Shown one piece after another: positions 6,528-14,418 of a DNA stretch of 64,000 bases (within the stretch, counting starts at the first letter, position 1; each line of letters begins with the position of its first letter). The DNA comes from Lepidodermella squamata. Its lineage: Eukaryota > Animalia > Gastrotricha. The position numbers were made by a program, and so were the translations under genes. The notes beneath the pieces are model-generated. The model saw only the letters and a list, made by a program, of their open reading frames with translations. It did no database searches and was not told where the DNA came from. The stretch covers positions 2,232,001 through 2,296,000 of the forward strand of contig JBLDXI010000009.1 of NCBI GenBank assembly GCA_047495785.1, in the 5' to 3' direction.

Positions 6528-9500
6528 ATGGAAGGAGCGGGTCGAGCTCGCGGTCGCGCTCGCGGCCGGGTTGCCGGGAGCGGCCTGAGTACTCCAGGCC
6601 CAGACGCCCCAAGTGAAGTATCAAATTCAGTGGCCACGGCTGCAATGCCGCGTGGTGGAATCGCCCCACGCGGTCGCGAACAGTCTGGTCCGGTCGACGC
6701 CAAGGGCCGCATGGAGCGCCTTCAGGCCGCAAGAGCACGTCGTATGGAATCAATCGTCATCCCGTTGACCAGGCCGCAAAATGTGACCAATACTCAAGGT
6801 AATTCAAGTTAATCAAATGGGACATGTTTAATCTATGTTTTATGTTTGATATTCTAGGCACGACAGGTGATCCTGTGGAGTTGGTTTCCAATTTCTTCAA
6901 GATTCAGGGCGGCCCGACTTGGTCCATGTATGAGTACCATATCGATTTCGAGCCCGAGATCGATTTTATCAGCCTTCGAATCCAGCTTGTGCGCGCCCAC
7001 AAGGATAAAATTGGCGAAGTTTTTTCCTTCAATGGCGCTAATCTGATTACTCCTAAGAATTTGGGCGAGGTAAGCATTCTATGCACTTATTTTTTAGTCT
7101 GTTGAAACCTAGATATTGGTTTTGGGAAATATTGATTCTGCATACTAGTTGCAATTCTGTGTCTTTTTCAGGAGAACATCTGGCATTCGACACGTGACAG
7201 TGATGGAGCGACCATCAAACTGCGAGTTCGGCGAACTGCCGAAGTTTCGCCCGACTCGGAAGAGGCCGTTCGCATTCTCGACAATGCCGTTCGTGACATG
7301 CAGAAGGCCCTCGAGCTGAAACAGTCGAAGAGAGATTTCTTTGACCCAGCCGCAGCTATTAACATGCAGAACTTCGGAATGACAATATGGCCTGGATACG
7401 CTATGACGATCACCAAGTATGAGAACGAGCTGTTGCTGAACATGGACATTATTCATCGCGTCATGCGTACCGATACCTGCTATGATATGATGCGCAAAAT
7501 TTTCAACGACGCTCGCCAGAACAATTTTGATCCGAAAGAAGCTATTTCAAAGGCACTCATTGGAACCATCGTCTTGACCAAGTACAACAACAAAACACAT
7601 ACGATCGATGACATCCTGTGGCCGCCAGAAAACTCCCCGTTAACGAAGTTCGAGCGCAAGGGCGAGGAGATTTCGATCGCCGACTACATGCGTATTCAAT
7701 ACGACGTGGTTATTCAAGACGTGAAGCAGCCTCTGCTGGTCACCCGTCCGCGAAAGATGGCTCGTCGTATTAAGGAGGAAGGCCGTGTCGACAAATTGGT
7801 TCCGGAGTTGTGCTTCATGACCGGTTTGACCGACGCCCAACGTGCTGATTTCCGCCTGATGAAGGAATTTGGCGAGATCACCCGCCTGAACCCGACGAAC
7901 CGTATGCAGCGATATACCGATTTCGGTCGCCGTGTCGCCAATTGTGACAAGGCCCGCAAGGTTCTGTCCGATTGGAACCTTCGTCTCGATCCGCAGCCGC
8001 TTCGCCTGAGGGGTCGACTCCTCAAGCCAATCGAGTTGACCACAGGTAGCGCTCCTATATGCCCTGATCAGAGCGCGGAATGGTCGAATGCAATCAAAAA
8101 TATGAAGGCTTGCGACCCTCAGCCGATGGATCCGTGGGTCCTGATCTTCCCACGTCGTGACGAACAAGCCGCCCGCGAACTTTCTGACGCTGTGTGCCGC
8201 ATTGCACTTGGCCTTGGCATTCAAGTTAGTGATCACTAGTTTTGCTTTCATATTCCGAATAATCTGATCAATTTTGTGTCTTTATTATCAGTGCCCGCCG
8301 CCTAGACCGTGTCCTATCGAAAATACGCGCGCCGATGGTTATAAAGCTGCATGTCAGCAGGTTTCGACGTTGCCTAACATCAAGCTCATCATGTGTCTGC
8401 TGGGCCGCAAGGATCGTCAGATCTACGAAGCAATCAAGAAGTTCACCCTCGTCGACGTCGGCATTCCATCACAGGTTTGTAATTATGCGTGTTTTAGATT
8501 TTAGATATTAAGTACTCATCATTCCTATTTGCAAAATGGCGCGAAAAGTGTTTAAAAATACTCTCTCTCTCTTGATCTGTTGATTCTAATTTATTTTACC
8601 AATGGAGAATCCAAACCAGACCTAGTCTGGTAAAATTTCCCGGATTGGGCGTAATCAACATCAATTTAGTTGGCTCGATCGATGATCCATTTATCGAACT
8701 TAACACAGTAAAGGTAAAGGTGGAGAAGATGGAGAAAAGCTAAAGCTTAAGTAGATAGTAACTGAAATGATTTCCCTCGAAACATTTACGATTTTATTGT
8801 CAATGTTTGAAGCCCTCAAAAACTCACCCTTGTTTTTTTTATTCAGTGCGTTGTTGTGAACACGCTCCGCAAGGGTATGATGAGCGTGGTGACGAAAATC
8901 ATGCAGCAAGTTTGCGTCAAATTGGGCGGCGCGTTGTGGAGCGTCCCGATTCCGTGCAAGACTGCGATGATTTGCGGCTTCGACACGTACCACGACTCGG
9001 CTGCTCGAGGCAAATCAGTCGGCGGGTTCGTTGCTACTACTGATCCTACGTTCACGAAGTTCTATTCGCGCTCGTTTGCTCATGAAGCTCGTGGTGAGCT
9101 CTCTCATCACCTGGTCGTCTGCCTGGCCGAAGCTATCAAAACATACCACTCGAAGAACGGTGTGCTGCCGGCGATCATCCTCTTTTACAGAGATGGTGTC
9201 GCGGACAACCAATTAAAGGCCGTACACGATAGCGAGGTGCAGCAGCTGAAAGAGGTCGCTAAGCAGTTTGGACCTGACTACCAGCCGAAGCTGTCGGTGA
9301 TCGTCGTTCAAAAGCGCATTCGTCCCCGTTTCTTCGCTATCAGGGGCCCACAAATCAACAATCCCACTCCGGGTACTGTTGTCGACAATACTATCACGAA
9401 TCCCAAGGCGTACGATTTCTACGTAATTGCCCAGTCCGTTCGCCAGGGTACAGTCACGCCGACTCGATACAATATCATTCACGAGTCGACTGCTCTTCAG

Positions 9501-12500
9501 CCCGACCATCACCATCAGCTGGCGTACCGTCTCAGCCATTTGTACTACAATTGGCCGGGAACAGGGCAGGAAAAAGTGTCCGATCGTGCGATCTATGATC
9601 GTGGGCAGTTTACAGGGCTGAAACCCCCTTTTCGTGGGCAGCTCGGCTTTTTGCTCATTATTTAAAAAGTCATTGCGTAACTATGAACTTCAATTTATTT
9701 GGAGGAAGAAAATCGAAATGTAAAAGATTAAAATTCGATGCGCCCTTTGGCGCTGGCGATGCGATCGACAACCTTCCCTGTTGCAAACTTGACCGCCCGA
9801 TCGCTGCGCCGCTTGAAATTCCACTCCCTTCCCTTAAAGTAATTATTTAACGCGGTAATCAAAAATTTTGAAGAATTCGGGTTGGCAGGATTTGGTCCAT
9901 TCCAGTGGATGAAGGTCTCTTTTGACACGACCGCATCGTCCGCCGGGCGATCGTGGCTAGCATGACGGTCCAAGACGGACCCCATCGACTCCACCACGGA
10001 CTCGCAGTGGCTCTTGAGGGCACATTTTAAATAAAAAGACATGAAGTCTTGGAGCCCTTCATGCAATGAAGCGGTATTCATAAATTGATACAACACCTCG
10101 CAGTGTTTTTGCCCATTTAAGGGAAGCGATTTAACCCGCTTGCTCCAAATGCGGTATTGACTGATTATCGAATCTCGATTGAGCAGCTGCCCACCTTCCT
10201 CGGCCTCGTCGATGATTTCAGAGAGGACGGATATCTGCTCTGGAGCCCCAGCCTTTATCAGTTCCACATTAAACACCAATGCAGCCTTGCTGCTCAGATT
10301 CTGCTGAGGCGGAAAACGTTCCACAAGTCGCTGCGTTATAGTCGTGCATAGACGCTTTCCTTGCTCGAGACATGATTTGGCAGTAGACAATAGGTCAGTA
10401 GGTCCGGTTGATTTAGCCGATCGAGTGACGACAATCTGCCCACCGCATTGGTCCAATTTGCGAGTTTTATACTTGCCCCCTAATAATAAGGAAGATTAGA
10501 TCCTCCCAAAACTGCCCAATTTCACACTTACCATTTTCTTGCAACTCCTTGTACGCGGAGTGGAACGATGGAAATTGATCAGCGCAATCTTCAATATCTA
10601 CTGCCGACATTTGGCGGAATTTCGATCTGGCGAGTTTTATTATCGTGTCAATTTCCCAATTCATCAAGTCGAAAGTTTGAACTTGTTTCGAGGTTTTACC
10701 AAGGAGATCGTAAACATCAATTGCCAAATTGAGCTGCAAAACGAGTTTCGCTTGGCCGATTTTCGCAGCTAGTGGGTCGCTCTTCTCGACAAGTTTCGCA
10801 TGCATCGTTGTGAAATTTTTGCGGAAATTGCGGAAAACCCCATCAGCGTAGGCTGCGAATCGGGTATCTAGTTATAATGACACAGGTAAAATACGTTTTT
10901 TGCGATTATCTCGATCAATTATCGATGATCAGCAGAAATCGATAATCGATAATCGATAAGTGGTGATAGATAGAGGAAATTGAGTGACACCAGCTTGTTC
11001 AGCGTGAAATTTCACCCTAGATGACAAATTTTCATGTTTCTATCATTCATAATAAGGCAGATATCGCACAATCAGTTTTACTTCCGGTGGGGTATGTTTA
11101 GGCGGCTTTAGGCAATTGATGTAGAATTTTTCAAAAAACCGGCAAAACCGCTTCCTTTGAACTCGAAATCCCCCTTAGAAACCCCGGAGGGGTAAAGTTC
11201 GTACGGCGGATTTGATTCCGTTTTCAGAATTTCAATAGCCCCCGTACTTCCGGAGATAGTTGATTTTTTTAAATTGTTTTATTACTTTATTGCACCGTAA
11301 TTATTTTTTCCTTCCAAAGCGTTATATACCCGTGTAATACATCAAACTAAGCAGTTTTTTGCGTAGAATCGCGTGGTGCAATTCATATTTGCATGGGATA
11401 AATGGCTTGCAAGTTATTGATGATTCAATTATTGACTAACCTGAAAATAGACCGACGCTCCCAAGCGAGGTTTCGGCAACAGAAGCCGCTTGTTCCAGCT
11501 CGTGAAACTTCTTTCCCCTGCCGAAATGCTTGAAAACTTCGGTGATCAAGTCAATCAGAGTTTTCAACCACTCGTTTTCAGAGCGGGCATCTTTCATCGC
11601 AAGCTCGATCAAGTGGGCAGGATCCCAGATAGCAGTGAGCCAGAGATCGCCTAGTAATTCTCGAAATCGGTCTGCTACACCAAGGTTAATGTACTGACCA
11701 TCGCAGGCTAATCCAACCAATCTTTGTCGCAGCATAGTTGTTGAATAATTCAAATTTGTTTGTAATACCGAAATCATGCTCTTGGTTAGCCCCAGACCTG
11801 CAAATATAAGTTGTTAGTTTTTAGATCCACGTGACTAATTTCCTTACCAGAGTGGTCCTGAACTACGGTGTTTTCGACGAAGATGGGCTGGATTCGACCT
11901 TGGAGAAATGCGGCGAGCCCAAGGATCTGCCCAGTCCGGCGTTTGGCAGTCATTTTATCCGTTAGCACAGCAATAGGTGTGGGCTCTCCAGTAGCAGGAA
12001 GGGCGTCGTGTAAAAGGAAAACCAGCTTATCCAATAATGTAGTAAAGAGGCATTTTGTAAATGAAGCTGCGAATTTCCGGCCGTGATTGACCTCGCCAAC
12101 CTCAATATCGGAAACTGCAAGTGCTGCTACTTGCCGCTCGAATTTAGAATAGGAAATCGCTTCACGCGCATTGTTGAACACAATACGCGCTAGTAGTAGC
12201 GCTAGAATATTGTTATTAGATTGATTACGCTTACAGCTTACATTAGCTATTAGAACTCACCAATTCTCTTCACAGATCTGTTGTTTGCAGCGACTTTTTC
12301 TTCAATTTTTTCAGCGTTTTCTTCAGCTACCAAATGTTTCTCGCACTCCAAATGTTCCGCCATGTTTCGCTATAAATCGGATTTTTAAAATGCTGGCTAA
12401 GAGAGAAATATCAAGTTAAAGGCGTACTTTCAAATTGCGAAATTCGATTGGCTGAGTGGTTTTCGCAAATTCTGATCCAAGTTCAAATTTGAACCGGAAT

Positions 12501-13757
12501 CGTCCAGTTTTGCCTTTCTCTGTTCCATTCTTCGTACACGACTCGCAACGGACCAGTACATCGCCAAACTCTTCGACTATTGAAAAACAAGGCGAAAGAG
12601 TGAGAATTCGAGAAATTCCTTTTGCTGATATGATAAGTGTTCGGAGCGCCTGCCGTTCAGCCTCTTCAGTCACATCGACACTTGGTAGAGGTACCACTCT
12701 GGCTCCGGTTGACGATTGTTTAGTGGCACTTTGTCCGGAAGAAACACTAACATTTCGAAGGCTTTGTTGGAGAACGCGAATCTCCTGCAACAACTCATTG
12801 GCCTTTGAATTGGTTATCGTATCTTCATTCGCTGAATTACGACTAAGATTGGATTGCCGATCAGTCGGTTCGACACTCGAGCTTCGAGATACCGCCGAAT
12901 GTGGTCCGGCCATCGACATGCGACTAGATGGAAGCATAACATCACAGTTGAAAACGTCGTCGTCATCAGCTGCAGTTGCTACATCAACAGGGTTTTCGTT
13001 GGTGGAAACCGACGATCCAGTGTCACTCACGGATGCCAAAGACGGTAGCGTAGAAGACGTGGTCACAGAATTAGTTGTTAGAGCTGAACTTGAACTAGCC
13101 GACGCTAAAGAAGGCAGCGTAGATGAAGTGGCCATGAGCTGAGCTGAGCTTGTACTACTTGCTTGTAATTTTTGAGCAGAGCTTGCACTACTAGCGAACG
13201 ATAGCTTGGTTTGCTTGGCCTGCTCTTTCTGCCATTCTTCCGGATGAACTGCCTGACGATGGCGATCAATGTGCTTCCGCATCATCGGTTTTCCACAGTC
13301 TTTACAAGGAACTTTTTCCTGGTTTGGCGCAACTCGATTCATTTTATTAGCAACAAGTAAATCAAAATGCTGGTGAACTATATAAATAAATATTAAAATA
13401 AATTAATTTCCTCGACAAATTTTCTATAACAAAATTAAATTAAATCAAAACAGCAACACTTTTCAACAAAAGCAAATTTTAGCTGGCACCCTCGTAATAG
13501 TCTAAATAAAATACCTTGTATTTATGCCAACGAGAAACAAGTGACTCATGTCACTCTTTAAACAAATAACAGCATATGGTGTTTGGTGGGCAGATTTTGC
13601 GCGATCGTGGGTCAGAAAACATGTTTTCCTACCCTGGCCGGGAACCATCCGCGTTGTTGCCCCGTGCCACTATGCTCACAAGCTGGCTTTCCTAGTCGGT
13701 CAGCACGTCCATTCCGAGACCCACCGCAATCTCTGGAACAAGTTGTACTACCTGTGA
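6528..13757 (+). CDS. piwi: Piwi-clade Argonaute (848 aa reconstructed); last exon disrupted by a hAT insertion
   Basis: Exons 6528-6798, 6858-7069, 7172-8224, 8292-8474 and 8847-9561 plus 13645-13757 join in frame with GT-AG introns once the element and one TSD copy are removed. N-terminal [10 protein letters not shown]; PAZ ([25 protein letters not shown]); MID-PIWI ([39 protein letters not shown]|[23 protein letters not shown]). Confidence 0.95.
9554..9574. repeat. Left TSD (GCCGGGAA) and left TIR of the hAT element
   Basis: gccgggaa|cagggcaggaaaa seen directly. Confidence 0.95.
9562..13636 (-). mobile_element. Autonomous hAT-superfamily DNA transposon (4,075 bp) inserted in Piwi exon 5
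   Basis: 8-bp TSD GCCGGGAA at 9554-9561 and 13637-13644. TIRs CAGGGCAGGAAAA / TTTTCCTACCCTG (13 bp, 1 mismatch). Encloses a transposase gene. Confidence 0.95.
9728..13342 (-). CDS. hAT transposase (ZNF862-like motifs), 6 exons, 940 aa, open frame
   Basis: Exons 13342-12428, 12369-12261, 12201-11848, 11797-11441, 10867-10532 and 10479-9728 splice in frame via GT-AG introns (2823 nt). N-terminal C2H2 finger (CKDC..HRQAVH), second CxxC..H..H finger, [41 protein letters not shown]. Minus-strand AATAAA at 9694-9699. Confidence 0.9.
13624..13644. repeat. Right TIR and right TSD of the hAT element
   Basis: ttttcctaccctg|gccgggaa seen directly. Confidence 0.95.
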
Positions 13758-14418
13758 GCTAATCGAGTGAAATCAAACGAAAGAACAGTATTGAAAGTAC
13801 TGTTTCGAACGTATATCATTTGCATGTCTTGTTTTTTTCTGAGCTCAATGAATTTTGTGAGTCAGTTATTATTTTGACTGTTTTATTCCAATCAGTATGT
13901 GACTCTTGTCTCTCAAACTTGTGCTCAAATTGTTATAGTGATATTGATATTAATTCTTGCCATGTATATAACATTAATATACTTAACTTAAATTAACATT
14001 AACAAATTTATATACCTACCTATATCTCAAAAGGTGTCTCACGTTGTCTATCAGTATTATTTGCCAAACTGGTTCATGAACTTGCGCCGCATATCTCATA
14101 TAATTTGGGAAACAATAAATGATTTTATCGATTGTTAATCGAATGTCTTCTTGATATCAAGTTTTTTGTTTCACTTCGATATTGATGATTGCCTTGCTGA
14201 TTCATGACCAGCAATTCAATACCTACTTATAGCTTGTGCAAGGTCCGACTAAACTGCAATATCATGTGAATATCCCATTCTCACACATTTTCAAATGAGT
14301 TGATGGGCATGCCTTACATTGGATTATAAAAAGATTCAACTTATTTAATGATGCAACAGCTTTTCTCGAGTTGCGTTTCAGTGAAAGCCTTGCCCTATTT
14401 GTTTCGCCAAGTTCTTGC

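Follow-up and report, generated by a model that had tools for sequence, protein, structure and literature searches.

A divergent hAT-type transposon within the last coding exon of a PIWI-clade gene of the gastrotrich Lepidodermella squamata

A stretch of 64,000 nucleotides from the genome of Lepidodermella squamata (Gastrotricha; GenBank assembly GCA_047495785.1, contig JBLDXI010000009.1, positions 2,232,001 to 2,296,000 of the forward strand), referred to here as the window and numbered from its first letter, contains a Piwi gene whose last coding exon is interrupted by a 4,075-bp transposon (positions 9562-13636). We consider it likely that a recently active, autonomous hAT element of a divergent lineage jumped into this exon of one PIWI-clade gene, and the locus is a real, very recent insertional allele of one PIWI paralog, and probably a null one. 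A recent jump disabling a Piwi gene had been proposed in a first-pass annotation of the window; the jump is supported at the sequence level, and the loss of function is predicted.

Insertion site and boundaries of the element

On the plus strand, the left border reads ...TACTACAATTG followed by GCCGGGAA, after which the element begins at 9562 with CAGGGCAGGAAAAAGTGT. At the right border the element ends with ...ACATGTTTTCCTACCCTG at position 13636 and is followed by a second GCCGGGAA and then by CCATCCGC. The features of the site are:

9554-9561, left copy of the 8-bp target-site duplication GCCGGGAA
9562-13636, minus strand, hAT-superfamily DNA transposon, putatively autonomous, with the transposase antisense to Piwi
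9562-9579, left terminal inverted repeat, which starts CAGGGCAGG and has identical ends in five other copies
13619-13636, right terminal inverted repeat, which finishes CCTACCCTG
13637-13644, right copy of the 8-bp target-site duplication GCCGGGAA

Both GCCGGGAA copies flanking the element are identical, i.e. the 8-bp duplication is perfect. The ends of the element form an 18-nt imperfect inverted repeat (83% complementary, CAGGGCAGGAAAAAGTGT against the reverse complement of ACATGTTTTCCTACCCTG); they start CAGGGCAGG... and CAGGGTAGG..., respectively, and are identical in every copy in which they are preserved. Three other insertions of the element in the genome have perfect 8-bp duplications of their own, GCTGCAAT, ATGCAGCT and ATAATAAT, and since these differ from one another, a chance origin of the duplication in the Piwi exon is discounted. 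The exon is split between the WPGT codons and its C-terminal part, with the left half ending in ...LYYNWPG(T). On the solved structure 7kx7 the two Piwi halves abut: the left one ends at residue 731 and the right one begins at residue 729, the overlap being the duplicated WPG. The length of the element, the perfect duplication, and all coordinates and numbers given in the first-pass annotation hold on re-reading. In the proposed course of events, the transposase would have excised a donor copy of the element and inserted it into GCCGGGAA, in the stretch that encodes W-P-G-T.

The host Piwi gene and the predicted effect of the insertion

Five exons were derived for the host gene, with GT..AG sites at all junctions:

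6528-6798, plus strand, exon 1, with the start codon at 6528 and N-terminal arginine-glycine repeats (open reading frame and GT donor)
6858-7069, plus strand, exon 2, Piwi_N domain (Pfam PF23278; splice sites)
7172-8224, plus strand, exon 3, linker 1 and PAZ (Pfam PF08699, PF02170)
8292-8474, plus strand, exon 4, MID region
8847-9561, plus strand, 5' part of exon 5, PIWI domain (Pfam PF02171, 6e-64) with the D, E, and D of DEDH, ending ...YYNWPGT
13645-13757, plus strand, 3' part of exon 5, with the catalytic His and the C-terminus, ending ...LYYL and the stop codon

Without the element and one copy of the duplication, the frame is open for 848 codons. Pfam searches of the successive plus-strand open reading frames return Piwi_N, ArgoL1, PAZ, and Piwi, which gives the N, L1, PAZ, MID, PIWI architecture. 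The exon model was compared with public sequencing data: a search of public reads gave four runs, all of them as de Bruijn contigs (which drop minor variants), and the contigs were placed on positions 8300-14200. Run X1 is a DNA run with contigs of up to 130 kb, and runs X2 and X3 are RNA-type. Two junctions are confirmed by the RNA-type runs: a contig of X3 reads across the 372-nt intron 4 (8475-8846) without it, and loose ends of X2 contigs show the joins between exons 3 and 4 and between exons 4 and 5. The description of the frame as otherwise pristine was confirmed by these five exons, the GT-AG junctions, the 848-residue open frame, and the D, E, and D residues upstream of the element.

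The closest matches in the PDB are Piwi-A, Piwi, Piwi-like 1, Siwi, and Piwi-like 2 (1e-69 to 1e-54), with human Argonaute-2 at 2e-23, and the host gene is assigned by its sequence to the PIWI clade and not to the AGO clade. In an ungapped alignment to silkworm Siwi, the Asp, Glu, and Asp of the window protein fall on D670, E708, and D740, and the His of YAHKLA aligns with H874 (alignment offset 859). These four Siwi residues are the DEDH tetrad, the H874K substitution abolishes slicing, and the C-terminal carboxylate is needed for the metal-dependent binding of the 5' phosphate of the PIWI-interacting RNA (piRNA) (PMC7015924). The identification of the YAHKLA His as the fourth DEDH residue, made earlier from the letters of the window, is thus borne out by the alignment together with that work, where the contribution of the extreme C-terminus to the piRNA 5'-end pocket, also claimed earlier, is documented.

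The tetrad is complete in the uninterrupted reading. In the assembled allele the His lies past the element and is lost, and translation continues into the element:

9562-9665, plus strand, read-through tail of the truncated Piwi, 33 foreign residues with a TAA stop at 9663-9665

The read-through sequence is GQEKVSDR...LLII. The interrupted allele encodes native residues 1-812 plus the 33 foreign ones, and the 36 native residues 813-848 are lost; the stop at 9665 and the loss of the last 36 residues, both noted at first pass, were re-derived from the open reading frame. The allele is predicted to be null, or at least slicer-dead and loading-defective, because the DEDH His and the C-terminal tail (with the carboxylate of the 5'-phosphate metal site) are missing.

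Paralogs, constraint, and redundancy

The nearest paralog is located 52 kb away on the opposite strand (contig 9, 2188533-2189251). Over the last exon it shows 89% DNA identity and 97.8% protein identity to the window gene. The divergence between the two (Nei-Gojobori method) is 0.645 per synonymous site (dS) and 0.011 per nonsynonymous site (dN), with a dN/dS of 0.017. Such a low dN/dS at a high dS implies long-standing, strong purifying selection on both copies. The window copy gives no indication of relaxed constraint; judged from these rates, it is not an old pseudogene and was under strong purifying selection up to the insertion. The same target site is uninterrupted in the paralog (TGGCCGGGAACCATT), whose exons for residues 68-848 keep an open frame with 85-98% identity to the window protein, and this neighboring copy is apparently intact. 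The paralog intron that matches the 372-nt intron 4 of the window gene has a length of ~2.9 kb (contig 9, about 2189250-2192120) and holds extra fragments matching Piwi residues 173-446 with 61-88% identity. This patchwork makes exchange between Piwi copies plausible.

At least 11 Argonaute-family loci are present in the genome. Two tandem genes on contig 25 are ~67% identical to the window gene in the PIWI domain, and a gene on contig 55 is of the PIWI clade by its PDB matches. About five loci are only 22-27% identical to the window gene and probably belong to the AGO clade, as far as identity can tell. A count of Piwi paralogs, recommended at first pass, gives five or six PIWI-clade genes including the window gene, the total depending on a further Argonaute-family gene at a contig-56 locus. 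The loss of the window copy may be buffered by the near-identical paralog and the three or four further PIWI-clade genes, and the phenotypic effect may be small because of this number of genes.

An uninterrupted form of the gene in other samples

In two of the runs the exon is found without the element. A joint from 9551 to 13635 skips exactly 4,083 bp, that is the element and one copy of the duplication, with no extra letters, and is present in X1 (depth 102) and X2 (depth 304). The empty site in its never-occupied form reads TGGCCGGGAACCATC, and the empty-site allele, a search for which had been advised in the first-pass annotation, was found as this uninterrupted junction in contigs of two independent public runs. 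The exactness of the empty site favors a never-occupied ancestral allele over an excision product.

The contigs were compared with the window gene and with its nearest paralog. Over 9343-9551 and the next 80 nt (289 sites), the empty-site contig differs from the window at 5 positions and the paralog at 21; over 9008-9372 (365 sites), the corresponding values are 23 and 60. An identity of the empty-site contigs with the neighboring paralog was rejected, because differences from the window are four times as numerous in the paralog. Among the listed differences between contigs and window (8885-9509 and 13676), 27 of 29 are synonymous, mostly at third codon positions. An X1 contig also aligns through the intron with ~98% identity (three substitutions and one 1-nt insertion). 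In addition, X1 carries another insertion of the element, known from contig 23 of the assembly, as a 27-nt loose end at the right end of the element is identical to that flank; X1 was therefore taken to be of the same species or very nearly so. A second exact match of the empty-site 15-mer, on contig 4, is not in a Piwi locus and was taken as chance. The window-type element variants missing from X1 were not accepted as proof that the insertion is absent there, because minor variants are lost from the contigs and most of the variants in question are also found in other genomic copies.

Judged from the contigs, an uninterrupted, constrained, and expressed form of the same gene exists in other samples, and it appears well expressed. 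The insertion is probably polymorphic, a young allele that is still segregating.

Copies of the element and their age

A second full-length copy, 99.63% identical to the window element, is found on contig 23 (1191733-1195803). Its transposase exon 6 lacks 4 nt (10406-10409 in window numbering) and is thrown out of frame, and the window copy is the only one found in the genome with an open transposase gene. Internally deleted derivatives with both ends kept are present on contigs 7 and 19, the contig-19 deletion with 22 nt of filler, and there is a truncated copy on contig 66 and a cluster of rearranged or inverted fragments on contig 4 (876026-880683). The deletions, the filler, and the rearranged cluster fit abortive gap repair, typical after hAT excision. 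The copy number and divergence of the family, which had also been named as a check, were followed within the assembly, where every copy in one comparison is 99.6-100% identical to the window element, and the derivatives, the truncated copy and the contig-4 cluster are at least 99.4% identical to it.

Only one substitution in the 4,075 bp of the window copy is unshared with other copies, and it is synonymous. The youth of the insertion, put forward at first pass, is supported by this single private substitution, by the perfect duplication, and by the uninterrupted form of the exon elsewhere. The family has apparently been active recently, and the window copy is apparently an autonomous element, to judge from its open frame. 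More diverged members of this Pfam-invisible family, some with long open frames, are located on contig 9 (4226269-4228474), contig 42 (129283-132003), contig 26 (92367-95158), contig 32 (2097305-2098412), contig 31 (381901-383295), and contig 15 (2096424-2097855).

The transposase gene and its assignment to the hAT superfamily

On the minus strand, five open reading frame pieces are joined by five GT..AG introns into a gene of six exons (2,823 nt, 940 codons, no internal stop), in which four introns have 50-59 nt and intron 4 has 573 nt:

12428-13342, minus strand, exon 1, with the start codon at 13342, a low-complexity region rich in Ser and Thr, and the CxxC...H motifs of a BED-like zinc finger
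12261-12369, minus strand, exon 2
11848-12201, minus strand, exon 3, first catalytic Asp in LTDKMT
11441-11797, minus strand, exon 4, second catalytic Asp in ACDGQY, WDPAH motif
10927-11388, unrelated dispersed repeat of ~460 bp, nested in intron 4
10532-10867, minus strand, exon 5
9728-10479, minus strand, exon 6, C-terminal region with a conserved motif, stop codon

The element had been called an intact hAT at first pass. The open frame stands once the five introns are removed, and the hAT name is supported by the fold and the end structure and not by Pfam. The nested repeat has more than 30 genomic copies at 70-78% identity; as it is found in both full-length copies of the element, it is part of the family's master sequence.

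No Pfam match was found for the five transposase pieces (E 0.01 or 10) or for ten of their relatives, and PDB sequence searches with two transposase pieces and with the family profile found no transposase. With these searches empty, hAT membership cannot be shown at the sequence level, and the assignment rests on the fold. A search with the last transposase exon against 1.84 billion representatives gave 286 relatives, which come only from Logan assemblies and are without names or Pfam domains. The spliced protein aligns colinearly over ~700 residues with proteins of 860-1,010 residues (27-30% identity, E down to 8e-96), which gives independent support for the exon model. The family alignment has the invariants D, D, W..AH, TRF, and E...E.MG, with 68 residues between the two Asp. 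The window protein matches 30 of 34 near-invariant columns, including D, D, W..AH, and E, and no catalytic or motif residue deviates. A CxxC...F.Y.F...NLK...H.....H block is shared by the family consensus and the window protein, without a zf-BED match in Pfam.

The Hermes fold consists of a DDE core of RNase H type with a large helical domain inserted into it. The fold was examined in a relative, P0031, with which the window protein aligns over residues 231-931 at E 8e-96. Its AlphaFold model (residues 250-930) has a predicted local distance difference test score (pLDDT) of 86.4 and a predicted template-modelling score (pTM) of 0.81. In a Foldseek search of the PDB with this model, the top 12 matches are all chains of the Hermes transposase (E 5e-9 to 4e-6, probability 1.0, target-normalised template-modelling score up to 0.63); the next match has E 0.055, and the P element transposase is the 38th. 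In the model the invariant Asp residues lie on or just after β-strands and the Glu at a helix start, as in DDE enzymes. Of the 100 ESM Atlas clusters nearest to the last exon, 87 carry PF05699 (top score 0.95, 182 shared features). The hAT inverted-repeat start consensus is a YARNG-type motif, which the element ends fit, and the 8-bp target-site duplication of hAT elements is found at four independent insertions. Because of the Hermes-like fold of the relative, the ends, the 8-bp duplications, and the ESM Atlas neighbors, the element is placed in the hAT superfamily by modeled fold and mechanism, as a divergent lineage outside the current domain models.

The window has 8 occurrences of the octamer GTGGGCAG, where 1.04 would be expected. 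Six of the eight lie inside the element, and three are at most 80 nt from its ends (9601-9641 and 13586-13593), all on the plus strand. It is a candidate subterminal transposase-binding motif. Searches for tRNAs and Rfam families gave none within the element or close to it.

Two relatives of the transposase (966 and 964 residues, 41% mutually identical) are encoded by single intronless open reading frames in Logan contigs of SRR20285000 (2727-5627) and SRR18067560 (2974-5868). Both adjoin a VPS4 gene in the same arrangement, and each is preceded by an open reading frame of 81-88 residues. A search for inverted ends around the two gave AT-rich chance pairs only. The synteny, conserved at such divergence, suggests that they represent a host gene domesticated from a hAT element, in which the D, D, E and WDPAH motifs have been preserved.

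Alternative explanations

Several points weigh against the reading of the locus as a young, segregating null allele made by an active hAT element. The loss of Piwi function and the activity of the transposase are predictions. The Hermes fold was seen in the model of a relative ~30% identical to the window protein, for which it serves as a proxy, and neither the hAT dimerisation domain (PF05699) nor zf-BED is matched in Pfam, nor does the family profile find Hermes in the PDB. The support for the junctions consists of the assembly and the duplication alone. X1 is heterogeneous at the locus: one of its contigs, of low depth, matches the window without differences over 8607-8885, and X1 may also carry the insertion. 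Of the 29 listed variants of the X1 and X2 contigs, 20 equal the base of the paralog. This suggests gene conversion between Piwi copies, or derived changes on the window haplotype, and a gene-converted or unassembled third Piwi copy may be the source of the empty site. It would then be conceivable that the insertion is fixed in the species or strain, that the X1 and X2 contigs come from such a third copy or from a sister taxon, and that the locus is a recently dead paralog. Besides the shared bases, this agrees with X1 containing no more than 52% of the words sampled from the flank and with the depth of the empty-site contig, 102, which resembles that of the paralog-type contigs (about 95). 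However, the contigs are far nearer to the window gene than to the assembled paralog (5 against 21 and 23 against 60 differences), ~98% identity in the intron is not expected if the copy had the age of the paralog (dS 0.65), no third genomic locus exceeds 74% identity, and the contig-23 insertion of the element is also found in X1. A fixed insertion is thus considered unlikely, while still keeping an appreciable share of the probability.

An artefact of assembly, in which a repeated element was misplaced into the Piwi exon, would be favored by the multi-copy nature of the element, with its nearly identical copies, and by the finding that no listed run contig bridges the junctions between Piwi and the element. 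Misjoins do not create target duplications, however; here an exact 8-bp duplication of host coding sequence lies at the inverted ends, as at three other insertions, and the copy has its own combination of variants, so that an artefact is extremely improbable. The interrupted allele might also retain Piwi function, by cryptic splicing that takes out most of the element, by germline excision that restores the frame, or as a truncated protein that acts independently of slicing. In other organisms, hAT elements in exons are sometimes partly spliced out, and hAT excision usually leaves footprints, of which the former speaks for retained function and the latter against it. Slicing is dispensable for the action of some PIWI proteins, and Drosophila Piwi has DVDK instead of DEDH; yet this non-slicing protein still uses the terminal carboxylate to bind the 5' phosphate (PMC7015924). 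Here the whole conserved C-terminal stretch of 36 residues is lost besides the His, and the element borders on the plus strand are not GT..AG. Retained function is regarded as very unlikely, and a young insertional allele of one PIWI gene, made by a recently active hAT element, is the reading kept below.

Meaning of the allele and comparison with known systems

The insertion offers a natural case, open to dating, in which an active transposon disables part of the machinery that keeps transposons in check, and the genome concerned has an enlarged set of PIWI genes. Should the allele segregate, individuals with and without it would be a ready-made experiment on PIWI redundancy and on whether piRNA immunity is triggered by an exon insertion in a germline gene. 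The hAT lineage is missed by the standard domain models, so annotation pipelines probably overlook such elements, and a working copy could serve as a gene-transfer tool. In the chimeric Piwi transcript, ~4 kb of hAT sequence in antisense orientation would form a new 3' untranslated region. In Drosophila, antisense insertions of Tirant in host exons or 3' untranslated regions seed piRNAs (PMC13226689). It is conceivable, with a rather small probability, that the antisense hAT in the terminal Piwi exon seeds piRNAs against its own family, or that the loss of Piwi permitted a burst of the family; if either is true, one allele would be linked to both the defence and the invader.

The element resembles Hermes, hobo, and Ac in the 8-bp duplication, the short imperfect terminal inverted repeats, the single transposase gene, the W..AH block, the D, D, E pattern, and the internally deleted non-autonomous derivatives. 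The fold is Hermes-like, as seen in the family member P0031; in Hermes, D180 and D248 are separated by 68 residues, the same spacing as in the family. The ends of Ac are like CAGGGATGAAA, and the ends of the present element likewise begin CAGGG. It differs from Hermes in its longer protein (940 residues), in the five introns, and in having no Pfam or PDB sequence match; the classical hAT transposases have CxxH where the window family has DPAH.

Natural hAT exon insertions and insertional piwi alleles are already familiar kinds. The Tol2 insertion in the medaka tyrosinase gene and the insertion alleles of Drosophila piwi and aubergine are loss-of-function insertions in exons. A literature search found no natural hAT insertion in a PIWI gene, which is no proof that there is none. 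The present allele is similar to those of Drosophila piwi and aubergine in having a PIWI gene as its target and in being a cut-and-paste insertion in a coding exon, whereas those are laboratory alleles and this one is natural, produced by an endogenous active family in one of several PIWI paralogs of a 121-Mb invertebrate-type genome. With the Tirant insertions it shares an antisense element in a terminal exon, from which read-through transcripts would gain an antisense transposon 3' untranslated region; it differs from them in that the host gene is itself a PIWI gene and that a DNA transposon takes the place of an endogenous retrovirus.

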